Positions 761 through 11,400 of a DNA stretch of 64,000 bases are shown piece after piece. The position numbers and the translations under genes were made by a program. Within the stretch, counting starts at the first letter, position 1; every line of letters starts with the position of its first letter. The DNA is from Macrostomum lignano (taxonomy: Eukaryota). The notes below the pieces were generated by a model that had not been told where the DNA came from, did not search any database, and worked only from the letters and a program-made list of their open reading frames with translations. The stretch covers positions 513,001 to 577,000 of the forward strand of contig NIVC01001811.1 in assembly GCA_002269645.1 (NCBI GenBank). Reading direction: 5' to 3'.

Positions 761-2449
761 ATGTCCTACCTTGTGCCTCCTTCGGCCAGCCAGTACGTGC
801 CTTCGCAGAGCATCCACTCCATGCCGGATGCGGTGCTCCTGGCTCCACCGGCTCATTCGGCGCAGACCGAGCGTCGAGTCAGCAGTCCGGAAACTTCGTC
901 CACGGCGGACACGAACCCGGGCCCGTCTGGCTCGGGAAAGTCAGCGGCCGCCTGCGGTAGCAGTCGGCACGGCCATCAGCATCAGACGCCGGAGTTTCTC
1001 CTTGTTGTGCCGGACGCCTGTGGCTCTTCCGTGTCAATGTCAGGCTCGGGCGCCCTGCTGCCGCCTGACGAGATTGACAGATTCGAGCGGGCGATCAACG
1101 AGAACGACGCCGACTTGGTGAAGCTGATCGTCCGCCGGCACGCCCTCGGCCTGTGCCAGCGTCGCTGCTCCCCGGCAGCGTCAACCAATTTGGCGCAGGA
1201 GGACGCTGCATCTCGAGTTGCGTTTTCCATCATGACGGACGTCGAGGTTCTTCCGGTCTCGGCTAGTCAGGCATTTCTGCTCCGATCGCGCAATAACTCG
1301 GCCGTCAGCGATCAGTATTCGTTTTTCACTGACGACGAACCGGCGTTAGGCACCGACGGCTCCCTGCCCCGAGGTCGCGGCGCCGTCCTGCGCAACTGCC
1401 TGCACTCTGCCATCGCGTCCGACTCCGTCGACTGCCTGCACGCCCTCCTCCGCATGGGCTTCGAGCCAAATCGCTGCGGACAGATTGTCAACTGGCAGCC
1501 GTTCTCCCGCTGGCTTCAACAGGAGCTGCGCCGCTGCACGACCCGCAGCCCGACAGCTGATTGCAGCTCGCCGCTGCCGGAGCTCAGCTTCGAGCACGCG
1601 TCTCGGATCGAGTCGCTTCGTAGAGCAATCTGTGCCGCACTGGGAGACGCAGACCCCATGGAGCAGGTGGCCTTCCTGCGCTGCCTGGTGCAGGCCAAGC
1701 CGTACAGAGACTTACTGTGCGGCTCTCCGCCCATCCTGCTCGCCACTCTGCTGAACAAGAAGCGCAGCGTCTCCTTGCTGCTCCGCTACGGAGCCAAAGT
1801 CAACGTACACGACTGCCTGCACAATTCGGCGCTGCACCTGGCGGTCTTCAACCTGCCGGAGTCGACCAGCATTCTGCGGCTGTTGCTGGCGAACGGAGCT
1901 TCAACCTGCTGCCGCAACTGCCTCGGCATCAGTCCGAACAACATTGACGGTGTGACTCTGCGGCAGGAGTCGCAACTGCTGATCAAAGCGGCACTGAGCT
2001 TCTCGTTTGCGTCGCGTTCAGCCGCAGGAGCATCCGGGGGTCCTGGAGGTCGCCGTCGACAGCAGCAGCAACAACAACAACAGCAGCAGCAGCAGTCGCA
2101 GAAATCCGGCGGTGCGCATCAGAAACGTTCGCGCTGGCAGGCGGCCACAAAGCTGGCCAAGGAGCGCGGTTTCCTCGGACGATCGGCCGCGACAGCCGTC
2201 GGATCCGAACGCAGCGAGTCGGTCAGCATGTCCTTCACCGATTCGGAGGTGGCGGCCGGCATGTCGATTGTCACTTCGACCGGCGTCTCGGGCTGTCCCG
2301 GCTCTGCTGCTGGTGCAACGTCGGCGACTCTGACCTCGACAACAGGCGCCACGGCGGCTGCTGCCGCGGCTGCTGTCGTAGCTTCGTCGACCAACAGCGC
2401 CACGGGTACCAGGATCCCCTCTGGCCCTGCTGCCGCCGCTGCCAATGAG
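761..2449 (+). CDS. PLCE1: PLCE exon 1: ankyrin-repeat region with poly-Q and Ala/Ser-rich tail
   Basis: ATG 761 preceded by an acceptor (ccgcag, 686) and an in-frame TAG. Ankyrin motifs [50 protein letters not shown] and [26 protein letters not shown]. Phase-0 donor GAG|gtcagt at 2449/2450, after which the ORF turns AT-rich. Ankyrin coding is strong; the link to PLCE is moderate. Confidence 0.7.
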
Positions 2450-8400: not shown

Positions 8401-11400
8401 TGGTAAAGTTTGCTCAGGTGCGAAAGCTTTTGTAGGCACACGAACCCCGACAAGCTTTCGATTCGTGCCTAAAAGTACACAGCCAACTAACAGATTTCAG
8501 CTTCCCAGAAGTATGAGGCACTTTCTGCTCCCTCTCGAGTCTCTACAGACAGGCCACTTGTGATTCGGCTCGGGTTCTCAAAGCCCCCTTTCCCATTCAA
8601 AAATGCCTTTCGTCCAACAATTTCGCCTCTCACGGGTCGACCATTAAACACTTGAGCGGGCCAGTTGAGCACCGCATTCGCATTATTATTTAACAGTCTC
8701 GTTAGAAACTACTTAAAAAGTCTAAACAACCGCCACTATCCTACTGTCAGCAGTAGAGTACGAGCATAGTTTGATCAAATTCTCGAGCTAGTTGGGTTTA
8801 TTTTACCTTCTGTACTATTTTCAGGTATCAGCCCGCAGTTGCTACGTGGATTCGCAGCACATCTTCAGCCTGAGCATCCAGGGAAATGCTCAGTTAGGTG
8901 AGTAGCGATATCAAGATAGTGCGTAAAAATATGAGCAGGCGCTTAAAATTCATCTGCTCAGCGCCAAGGTTGACACTATTGAAGAGAAGCAGGGAGAGAG
9001 GCAGGGAGAGAGGCAGGGAGAGAGGCAGGGAGAGAGGCAGGGAGAAAGGCAGGGAGAGAGGCAGGGAGAGAGGCAGGGAGAGAAACGGGGAGAGAGGCAG
9101 GGAGAGAGGCAGGGAGAGAGGCCGGGAGAGAGGCAAGGAGAGAGGCAGGGAGAGAGGCAGGGAGAGAGGCAGGGAGAGAAACGGGGAGAGAGGCTGGGAG
9201 AGAGGCAGGGAGAGAAACGGGGAGAGAGGCAGGGAGAGAGGCAGGGAGAGAGGCAGGGAGAGAGGCAGGGAGAGAGGCAGGGAGAGAGGGAGAGGAATAG
9301 ATAAGGAGACGCGGCAGGAAGTGTCCTGAGCGGTTTACCCAAGCCGCCGTGCCCTTTCCCCTGCGCAGGCCTCTGCATCCCCTCCCCTATCCTCGCTACT
9401 TTCCGCTCCCAGATCCTCGCAGCGGGCTCTTCCCGCCCGTCTTTTACTGAACCGCCCCGCCCCGCCCCCCGGTCGGGACCCCTCCTTAAGTCCCCCCTCC
9501 CGTAGACTCCCTCCGTGGCAATGAGCTCGCAGCCTCAACCGCAGTCTGAGGCCACACCCGTCTCACTCCCATCCCATCTCTTCTCCCAACCCCCCGTCAG
9601 CCCCCCGGTAGAGGAAAGGAGAAAGCTGCTTGCTTGCGGTCGCAGAAGAAGCAGCAGAGTCGAGTCTCGGGTGTGTGTGTGTGCGCTTGTCTGTCTGTTA
9701 GTGTGTGGCGCGAGACGGATAGAAGGCGAGACTGACGAACCCAAGGAATGAAGCGGGGCCCGATGGCCCAGGGGTCACAGGCCTGAGGAAGAAAGGAGAG
9801 AGGAAGAGAGGGAGAGAGAGGGAGAGAATGCCCTAAGTCTCTCAGCTCCTTCTCTCTTCTGCCGCAGTGTATCCTCGGCTAGCATTTGAGTCCGTCACGC
9901 TGAGGATTGGTTTTCCTAGAAAACGCTGTCCCACCCCATCCCGTAGATTTCTCCCCTCTCCCCTCCCTTTTCCTGCTCGTCCCAGCAGCGCCTTCCCTCC
10001 TTCAAGCCATTTTTTAGCTAGCTACAGCCTGTGCTCAAAAAAGACTTCAGGCGGTGTGAGGTCTATACGTATAATGCTGATAGACAGACTTATAGCTGGC
10101 TTTATTTTTGTCGTGTTATTAGGCTGTGACCCAATGCAGGCCGTTAATCTCAGTTGTAATTGAGCACTACCATTATTACCGTGAGTAGTTGACAGTTGAG
10201 ATAGTTAACACTGCTCATTTGTCCAGGCATGGACGATCTGGAGAGAAGCGTGGCTGTGCTGGTGAAGATGGCAGCTACTGGGGAAAATCTTCCCACTATT
10301 TGCCACGGCTTGGGCAGCTTCGTGTCTGAACTGGTGAACATTCAGGGCATCACTGCCGACGAGGAGAAGGTGATGGACCGGCACCTGAACACTCTGCTGT
10401 GGCATCTGCTGAAGGTAAGTGCATAACGCATGGTTGCCGTGGAGTCCATATCTGGGCATGAATTTTAGGCTGCTTTTGGCATCATTGGATGGTTTGAATT
10501 TTAATCATAACAATAAATTGGATCAGGTAAATGAAAAACTAAAAACAAAATTAGAAATTTTGCAAACTGTTAGAGACTAGATATACGGCAGATTATAAAA
10601 TATTAAGATTGGGGTAGACATGAGATTAGAGACTGGGTAGATTGGAGAACTAAGATTGGAGATAAGAGATTAGAAATTAAACAGAATGGAGATTGGAGAT
10701 TGGAGATTGGGTAGACTGGAGATTGGAGATTGGGTAGACTGGAGATTGGAGATTGGGTAGACTGGAGATTGGAGATTGGGTAGACTGGAGATTAGAGATT
10801 AGGTAGACAAGAGATTGGAGATTGGGTAGACAAGAGATTGCAGATTGGGTAGACTCGAGATTGTAGGTTGGGTAGACTAAAGATTATGGATTTGGGTAGA
10901 CATTAGATTAGAGACTGGGTAGATTGGAGAACTAAGATTGCAGATAAGAGATTAGAAATTAAACAGAATGGAGATTGGAGATTGGAGATTGGGTAGACTG
11001 GAGATTAGAGATTGGGTAGACAAGAGATTGGAGACTGGGTAGACTGGAGATTAGAGATTGGAGAGTTAGACAAGACAAGTTAGACAAGTTAGACTGGAGA
11101 TTAAAGATTTGTTAGACAAGAGATTGGAGATTGGGTAGACAAGAGATTGGAGATTGGGTAGACTGGAGATTGTAGGTTGGGTAGACTAAAGATTATGGAT
11201 TGGGGTAGACATTAGATTAGAGATTGGGTCGATTGGAGAATTAAGATTGGAGATAAAAGATTAGAAATTAAACAGAATGGAATTTGAGATTGGAGATAGG
11301 GTAGACTGGAGATTAGAAATTAGGTAGATGGGAGATTGGAGCTTGGGTAGACAAGGGATTGGAGATTGGGTAGATAAGAGATTGGAGACTGGGTAGACTG

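Follow-up and report, generated by a model that had tools for sequence, protein, structure and literature searches.

A probable PLC-epsilon gene with an upstream ankyrin exon in the flatworm Macrostomum lignano

PLC-epsilon connects Ras and Rap GTPases with phosphoinositide signalling, and the mammalian enzyme is approximately 2,300 amino acids (aa) long. The N-terminal third of mammalian PLC-epsilon is conserved and required for full activity, has no predicted fold and is the least understood part of the protein; the paper that describes it mentions neither ankyrin nor FERM modules (PMC12501065), and our search for literature on PLC-epsilon with ankyrin or FERM modules found nothing relevant. 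Here we analyse a stretch of 64,000 nucleotides (nt) of Macrostomum lignano DNA (assembly GCA_002269645.1, contig NIVC01001811.1, positions 513,001 to 577,000 of the forward strand), called the window below, in which a large open reading frame (ORF) with ankyrin repeats lies upstream of the exons for a PLC-epsilon. The interval 761-41281 on the plus strand is in our judgement most probably one gene, encoding a PLC-epsilon of approximately 3,800 aa, in which the ankyrin exon is cis-spliced to the exons of the body. The 5'-most coding exon in the window (761-2449) would be spliced through a short exon at 8825-8897 to 10227-10414 and then to approximately 24 further exons, and the product would carry, in this order, split ankyrin repeats, a conserved helical domain, a REM-like helix, FERM lobes F2-F3 resembling those of talin, and CDC25, EF, X, Y, C2 and RA domains. 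Our description, based on predictions, adds a new domain arrangement to a known enzyme family and does not amount to a new kind of system.

Splicing of the ankyrin exon and the gene model

The ankyrin ORF extends from 761 to 2533 (590 aa, with TGA at 2531-2533), and a phase-0 donor, GAG/gtcagt (the slash marking the splice boundary), follows position 2449. The preliminary description of this DNA had placed this donor at the end of the GC-rich coding character, and its coordinates proved correct: the GC content falls from 0.685 (2250-2449) to 0.37 (2450-2649). The 73-nt exon, 8825-8897, is bounded as ttttcag/GT...TTAG/gtgagt and can be read without a stop, entering in phase 0 and leaving in phase 1, and an acceptor, tccag/GCATGG, lies just 5' of 10227 and completes the frame. 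When 761-2449, 8825-8897 and 10227-10414 are joined, the resulting 1,950 nt are free of stops, and the frame runs unbroken into the PLC core, just as had been claimed.

Splice sites were given scores from a generic position weight matrix, and each was placed in the ranking of all GT or AG dinucleotides of the window. Donor 2449 scored 3.5 bits (95th-99th percentile), and acceptor 8825 (5.5 bits), donor 8897 (6.8 bits) and acceptor 10227 (5.0 bits) all exceeded the 99th percentile, which bears out the earlier statement that the 73-nt exon has strong sites; donor 10414 scored 8.4 bits. The sequence between the flanking exons contains 10,477 AG..GT intervals of 20-400 nt, of which only 8825-8897 combines an acceptor of at least 5 bits with a donor of at least 6 bits; of the 13 intervals whose sites both score at least 3, no other bridges the frame. 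Because the top-scoring interval would bridge the frame by chance with a probability of about 0.1, the frame arithmetic by itself is suggestive, and it is the homology evidence explained below that makes the case convincing.

Two gene models of M. lignano bear directly on these junctions. The UniProt entry A0A1I8FLF6 (P0131), a gene model from the earlier ML2 assembly, reads 2261-2449, 8825-8897, 10227-10414 and 13243 onward, with exact junctions and no added exons, and starts at an internal Met (2261) of the ankyrin ORF. The second model (P0001) carries the 2449/8825 junction, too.

The final gene model consists of 27 exons, all delimited by GT-AG, and of 3,823 codons without an internal stop, leading from ATG 761 to TAA 41279-41281; ATTAAA is found at 41312, 31 nt 3' of this TAA. 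Exons were chained by a simple dynamic programming procedure on the basis of codon log-odds and splice scores. The strict run gave first three exons identical to those of the preliminary description and continued the chain to the PLC core; the permissive run added extra exons of 3-16 nt, which we judged to be spurious. Exon 5 was set to 14718-14964 by homology, and the least secure exon boundaries of the model are those from 32179 to 36635. The product had been described as a giant protein of about 4,000 aa (4,038 aa); it is very long, at 3,823 aa in our model, and the difference of about 200 aa lies in small or low-complexity exons.

Two other features of the existing models were not adopted. 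The mini-exons 9413-9471 and 9612-9670 (59 nt each), which occur in P0001 only, have an in-frame TGA, a frameshift, a non-GT donor and weak sites, and the mRNA made from this copy most likely lacks them; the P0001 peptide over them is a hybrid of two frames, pointing to an indel in ML2 or in a paralogue. P0001 also drops an in-frame 297 nt of polyglutamine or low-complexity sequence within the ankyrin ORF (1952-2248) as an 'intron' with weak sites (-2.3 and -0.9 bits), and a further model, P0002, drops approximately 1952-2235, resumes in a different frame and stops at TGA 2446. This stretch may be an 'exitron', retained or removed, or may be an annotation artefact.

Colinear homologues and predicted domains

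For a search across phyla we used the region 3' of the ankyrin ORF, with low complexity removed, as the query, and this search returned LOC124594436 of the grasshopper Schistocerca americana (P0124) and KUTeg_005014 of the clam Tegillarca granosa (P0123). The grasshopper protein, a RefSeq entry of 1,703 aa that is called 'uncharacterized' and has a Pfam Ank match, is colinear with aa 100-1670 of our model (Table 1), and its exon-3-like part sits between its ankyrin and helical parts. By this colinearity, one predicted insect protein unites the ankyrin part with the part from exon 3 onward. The protein differs from ours in ending within FERM F2, at '...GQ/VSKYLNVPK', which resembles read-through of a donor; it has no annotated PLC part and is not named PLC-epsilon. 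Since its gene spans 822 kb, the grasshopper model is probably truncated.

The helical domain matches the clam protein at 2e-58. On T. granosa CM056605.1 (7.02-7.08 Mb, KUTeg_005014...KUTeg_005017), both loci are on the forward strand within approximately 60 kb: the helical domain maps to about 7.025 Mb and is followed by FERM, RasGEF, EF, X, Y, C2 and RA, in this order, at 7.051-7.076 Mb. The clam locus differs in that it is annotated as several separate 'hypothetical' genes, and no ankyrin exon was found upstream of it in the 10 kb that were read. One tblastn high-scoring segment pair on the clam DNA covers exons 9 and 10 of M. lignano and is unbroken at the intron position, and this validates the 5-kb M. 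lignano intron there. The large ankyrin exon itself, orthologous to 761-2449, is present in a Logan contig of a third species (L003). There, as in the window, the ORF continues for just a few codons after a donor-like site, where GC-rich sequence gives way to AT-rich.

Searches for proteins holding both parts gave little more. A word-indexed search with the joined 650-aa product returned just two M. lignano models, and polyglutamine or polyalanine words may have swamped its 8,000-candidate prefilter. In an exhaustive HMMER search with the ankyrin ORF, no full-length protein with ankyrin repeats and PLC was found among the best 150 matches, where generic ankyrin proteins dominate and only P0131 matches the rest of the protein. 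Among further PLC fragments, the two that could be placed begin, as judged by eye, at or after the EF/PH region and are uninformative on deuterostomes.

In the ankyrin ORF, Pfam finds Ank_2 at aa 309-383 (1.7e-8, 35.3 bits; cut-off 27.3) and Ank (1.8e-7, 31.5 bits; cut-off 21.1), the Ank matches together covering aa 309-386. A weaker ankyrin repeat lies at aa 211-239, DARPin proteins match aa 319-397, and conserved motifs occur at approximately aa 101-125, 209-242 and 316-407. Farther along, beyond the helical domain of exons 4-8 (model aa ~850-1160), FERM_M (4.2e-8, 34 bits; cut-off 23.8) spans three exons, 21245-28440, and the F3/PTB-like lobe gives weak Pfam matches only. Assignment as a FERM domain requires F2 and F3 lobes, and both were found; the top PDB sequence match of the FERM part (segment aa 209-320) is talin F2-F3 (talin-2 3g9w, 1.8e-8). 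No F1 ubiquitin-like lobe was detected, in that Pfam gave neither a FERM_N nor an RA match upstream of F2 at an E-value of 1 or less. AlphaFold2 models of the helical domain (three-sequence alignment) and of the REM-like and FERM parts (single sequence) reached a predicted local distance difference test score of 40 and 38, respectively, which is too poor for a fold search.

RasGEF (PF00617, 3.6e-11) was found on the exons at 29751-32002, in the same reading frame as the PLC core and N-terminal to it, and the region matched RasGRP1 in PDB at 0.005. In the core, PI-PLC-X (PF00388, 6e-61), PI-PLC-Y (PF00387, 2.3e-31) and EF-hand_like were matched, followed by C2 (2.2e-8) and RA (1.8e-9); the X-domain catalytic motifs SSHNTYL, ELDCHDG and IYHG are visible by eye in the translation. 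A single RA domain passes Pfam, and the RA1-like stretch was recognised by eye only. The domain order given in the preliminary description was recovered for Ank, FERM_M, RasGEF, EF-hand_like, X, Y, C2 and RA, but not for REM and PH: Pfam did not detect REM in the predicted product, and gave no PH match at an E-value of 1 or less between CDC25 and the EF hands, a region that aligns to the clam locus.

The PLC core ORF (37275-39218) is 100% identical to the M. lignano UniProt entry A0A1I8HHU3. Among the 120 matches listed for the core, the best subtype-named ones are PLC-epsilon, with PLC-eta appearing from approximately 280 bits down, and the two top matches are M. lignano entries named just 'Phosphoinositide phospholipase C'. 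The predicted C-terminal 1,900 aa agree with PLC-epsilon in every defining feature that could be checked. As separate observations from the core search, none of the 120 matches listed is longer than approximately 1,134 aa, and one of them, A0A1I8I8R9, is another PLC-epsilon-like protein of M. lignano, 63% identical in the core; this paralogue fits the known gene duplication in the species.

Table 1. Exons of the predicted PLC-epsilon gene (positions in the window) and segments of its product aligned with the grasshopper protein P0124 (positions in the model)
Feature	Position	Strand	Description or counterpart
Exon 1 (coding)	761-2449	+	1,689 nt; ATG 761, A at -3; N-terminal split ankyrin-repeat region; polyglutamine/polyalanine tracts
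Intron 1	2450-8824	+	6.4 kb, AT-richer, microsatellite-rich; read-through hits TGA 2531-2533
Exon 2	8825-8897	+	73 nt; 24 residues + G; phase 0 to 1, as exon 3 needs; in P0001 and P0131
Exon 3	10227-10414	+	contains ...LLWHLLK; ATG 10229 directly past acceptor; homologous to P0124 aa ~660-717
Exons 4-8	13243-14127, 14718-14964, 15055-15218, 17927-19513, 19599-19670	+	Gly/His-rich linkers, conserved helical domain, low-complexity stretches, REM-like helix
Exons 9-12	21245-21487, 26501-26677, 28327-28440, 28651-28954	+	talin-like FERM F2 (FERM_M) and F3 (PTB-like)
Exons 13-15	29751-29926, 31057-31202, 31526-32002	+	CDC25/RasGEF
Exons 16-18	32179-32236, 32341-32353 (doubtful), 32466-32842	+	polyglutamine linker / presumed PH / EF-hand region (shared with exons 19-21)
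Exons 19-21	33317-33540, 35394-35556, 36059-36635	+	polyglutamine linker / presumed PH / EF-hand region (shared with exons 16-18)
Exons 22-25	37300-39191, 39349-39507, 39604-39706, 39789-40189	+	EF-hand_like, PI-PLC-X, long X-Y linker, PI-PLC-Y, C2
Exons 26-27	40265-40451, 40506-41281	+	RA1-like and RA2; stop TAA 41279-41281
N-terminal motif	model aa ~101-125		P0124 aa 20-44, motif EAAQLERAIRNND; local score 42
Ankyrin ORF, first half	model aa 209-242		P0124 aa 123-156; E 5e-5
Ankyrin ORF, second half	model aa 316-407		P0124 aa 445-538; E 1e-8
Exon 3 and start of exon 4	model aa ~588-730		P0124 aa 660-788; score 69 vs shuffles 33±5.5, z = 6.5
Helical domain	model aa 849-1127		P0124 aa 882-1167; E 5e-40
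REM-like helix and FERM_M start	model aa 1547-1669		P0124 aa 1560-1671; E 1e-8

Alternative readings of the locus and its 5' end

Several observations weigh against a single cis-spliced gene. Junction support within M. lignano comes from gene models on ML2, the first assembly of the species, which is error-prone (PMC5730564), and not from demonstrated cDNAs; past 13243, P0131 is frameshifted relative to the window, as expected for ML2. In P0001 and P0002 (UniParc), and only there, sequence from upstream of position 1 of the window contributes half a Forkhead domain (the C-terminal half), fused in frame with the ankyrin exon at acceptors 752 and 698, which indicates that this annotation over-merges. 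The grasshopper protein is itself a computed prediction that stops within the FERM domain, donor 2449 is of moderate strength, and the procedure that chained our exons cannot close one gene and open another, so that its output does not count as independent proof. ATG 10229 lies only two bases past acceptor 10227, and in M. lignano approximately 7% of assembled transcripts represent multi-gene precursors and approximately 39% of the genes are trans-spliced to a spliced leader (SL) (PMC5730564).

Because precursor RNAs and trans-splicing are common in this species (PMC5730564, PMC8629364), a real rival is that two genes share one transcription unit, a 590-aa ankyrin protein ending at TGA 2533 and a PLC-epsilon starting at ATG 10229 through SL trans-splicing at 10227 (or at 8825), the joined models representing precursor RNA or over-merging. 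The position of this ATG directly past the acceptor and the merging of the Forkhead exon by the same annotation would suit such an arrangement, as would acceptor 8825, whose TTTCAG fits the reported trans-splice motif [T/C]TNCAG. We consider it unlikely nevertheless, since ankyrin and exon-3-like segments share a single chain in the grasshopper protein, no other interval is as well flanked by splice sites as exon 2, which repairs the frame exactly, and the GC-rich coding character stops at the donor and not at the TGA. In addition, the SL of M. lignano (CGGTCTCTTACTGCGAAGACTCAATTTATTGCATG) has an ATG of its own that, read by eye from the sequences, would be out of frame at 10227. AATAAA and ATTAAA are absent from the 1.5 kb past TGA 2533, which is weak evidence against a gene ending there, P(0) being about 0.18 at the density in the window. 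A shorter isoform, made by trans-splicing or from an internal promoter and starting at exon 2 or 3, could also accompany a long Ank-PLC-epsilon mRNA. This is compatible with a single cis-spliced gene, and we regard it as possible, if rather doubtful: nothing in the DNA requires a shorter isoform, whereas ATG 10229 just past a strong acceptor, the frequent use of trans-splicing by M. lignano and the differing starts of its gene models (P0131 at an internal Met) would all accommodate one. Mammalian PLCE1 has alternative 5' ends.

The preliminary description had called the ankyrin ORF the first exon of PLC-epsilon. Its splicing to the body has independent support from the P0131 junctions, the grasshopper protein and the clam locus; its being the first exon is unproven, for P0001 and P0002 splice upstream exons into the weak acceptors 752 and 698. 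That the gene extends farther 5', so that the Forkhead exons belong to the same protein, seems to us very improbable. Both models do read in frame from the C-terminal half of the Forkhead domain into the ankyrin exon, and in the L003 exon no in-frame Met precedes the conserved N-terminal motif; the acceptors, however, score -2.2 (752) and -3.2 bits (698), the upstream part amounts to half a Forkhead domain plus translated repeats, P0001 and P0002 disagree in this stretch, and the grasshopper protein begins approximately 25 aa before the conserved motif, without a Forkhead domain. The fusion probably reflects either an adjacent FOX gene that the annotation merged or a precursor RNA. At both acceptor 698 and acceptor 752, the frame would also be kept by an SL leader with a terminal ATG. 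ATG 761, with A at -3, is the first ATG after the stop at 695-697, and the window starts 760 nt upstream of it. This candidate may be the true start, and both the start of the grasshopper protein near the conserved motif and the lack of an upstream Met in the L003 exon bear on it.

Surroundings, possible role and comparison with known systems

The region shortly before the ankyrin exon (1-420) carries about five copies of a tandem repeat of approximately 59 nt (1-290), followed by a telomere-like interstitial (CCCTAA)n run at about 301-335 and, beyond it, by an inverted partial copy of the repeat unit. The introns are full of very long microsatellite and minisatellite arrays (12150-13240, 16000-17900, 20590-21130, 22580-24500 and 26680-27240), which produce long spurious open frames on both strands. 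Downstream of the PLC-epsilon gene, the opposite strand (48400-51650, minus) carries exons of an MFS-type transporter, whose matches to MFS_1 and MFS_2 are weak. The start of an alpha-2-macroglobulin-like gene (58139-63582, plus; MG2 at 4.7e-13 and the A2M bait-region domain at 1.3e-16, with one weak LDL-receptor class A match, 4.5e-4, under the Pfam cut-off) continues beyond the window end.

The frame, the splice signals, the domain matches and the grasshopper and clam colinearity were read from the sequences, and from them we infer a possible function. The C-terminal half would act like the known PLC-epsilon, hydrolysing PIP2 and PI4P when triggered by Ras- or Rap-GTP at the RA domains, and the CDC25 domain would activate Rap, as in the known enzyme. 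To this the front half of approximately 1,900 aa would add docking surfaces, with the ankyrin repeats binding protein partners and FERM F2-F3 binding membrane lipid or NPxY-type tails, and together these modules could localise or gate the enzyme.

Judging from the alignments, the front half is present also in the grasshopper and, in part, in the clam, and it is not described for the mammalian enzyme; public annotation holds it just as 'uncharacterized' or split models (P0124 and the clam loci). We tentatively suggest, as a possibility somewhat short of likely, that the PLC-epsilon of protostomes, and perhaps of bilaterians, ancestrally had the Ank/helical/FERM(F2-F3) block as its front half, which was overlooked because annotations split it off. 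If so, the 'unstructured' N-terminus of vertebrate and nematode PLC-epsilon would be a degenerate remnant, and the modules since lost would once have linked the enzyme with Rap signalling and with receptors of the membrane or adhesion type, as talin and KRIT1 do. Folded modules in invertebrate orthologues can provide concrete, testable hypotheses on the former role of the N-terminal region. Current invertebrate annotations cut the PLC-epsilon gene into 'uncharacterized' pieces, and a practical gain of this analysis is a corrected gene model in a regeneration model organism.

Among known proteins, KRIT1 (CCM1), a Rap1 effector, likewise joins ankyrin repeats and a FERM domain in a Rap-linked protein, and our FERM part gives a faint KRIT1_FRMD8_FERM_C match (E = 0.2). 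In the flatworm protein, more than 1,000 aa, including the helical domain, part the ankyrin repeats from the FERM domain, and neither a Nudix match nor an NPxY N-terminus was seen. Identity as a KRIT1-like protein (Nudix-NPxY-Ank-FERM) was rejected on these grounds and because talin matches better, so the resemblance is one of theme only. Talin F2-F3 is the best solved-structure match of the module; the flatworm part differs in having no detected F0 or F1 lobes and no rod, and the homology is that of one module and not of the whole protein. With mammalian PLCE1 and Caenorhabditis elegans PLC-1 the predicted product shares CDC25/RasGEF, EF hands, X, Y, C2 and C-terminal RA, and its CDC25 entry motif ...LIHFPEEVA... 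presumably resembles the human sequence. It differs from both in the approximately 1,900 aa with ankyrin repeats, helical domain and FERM F2-F3 that precede CDC25, giving a predicted total of approximately 3,800 aa.

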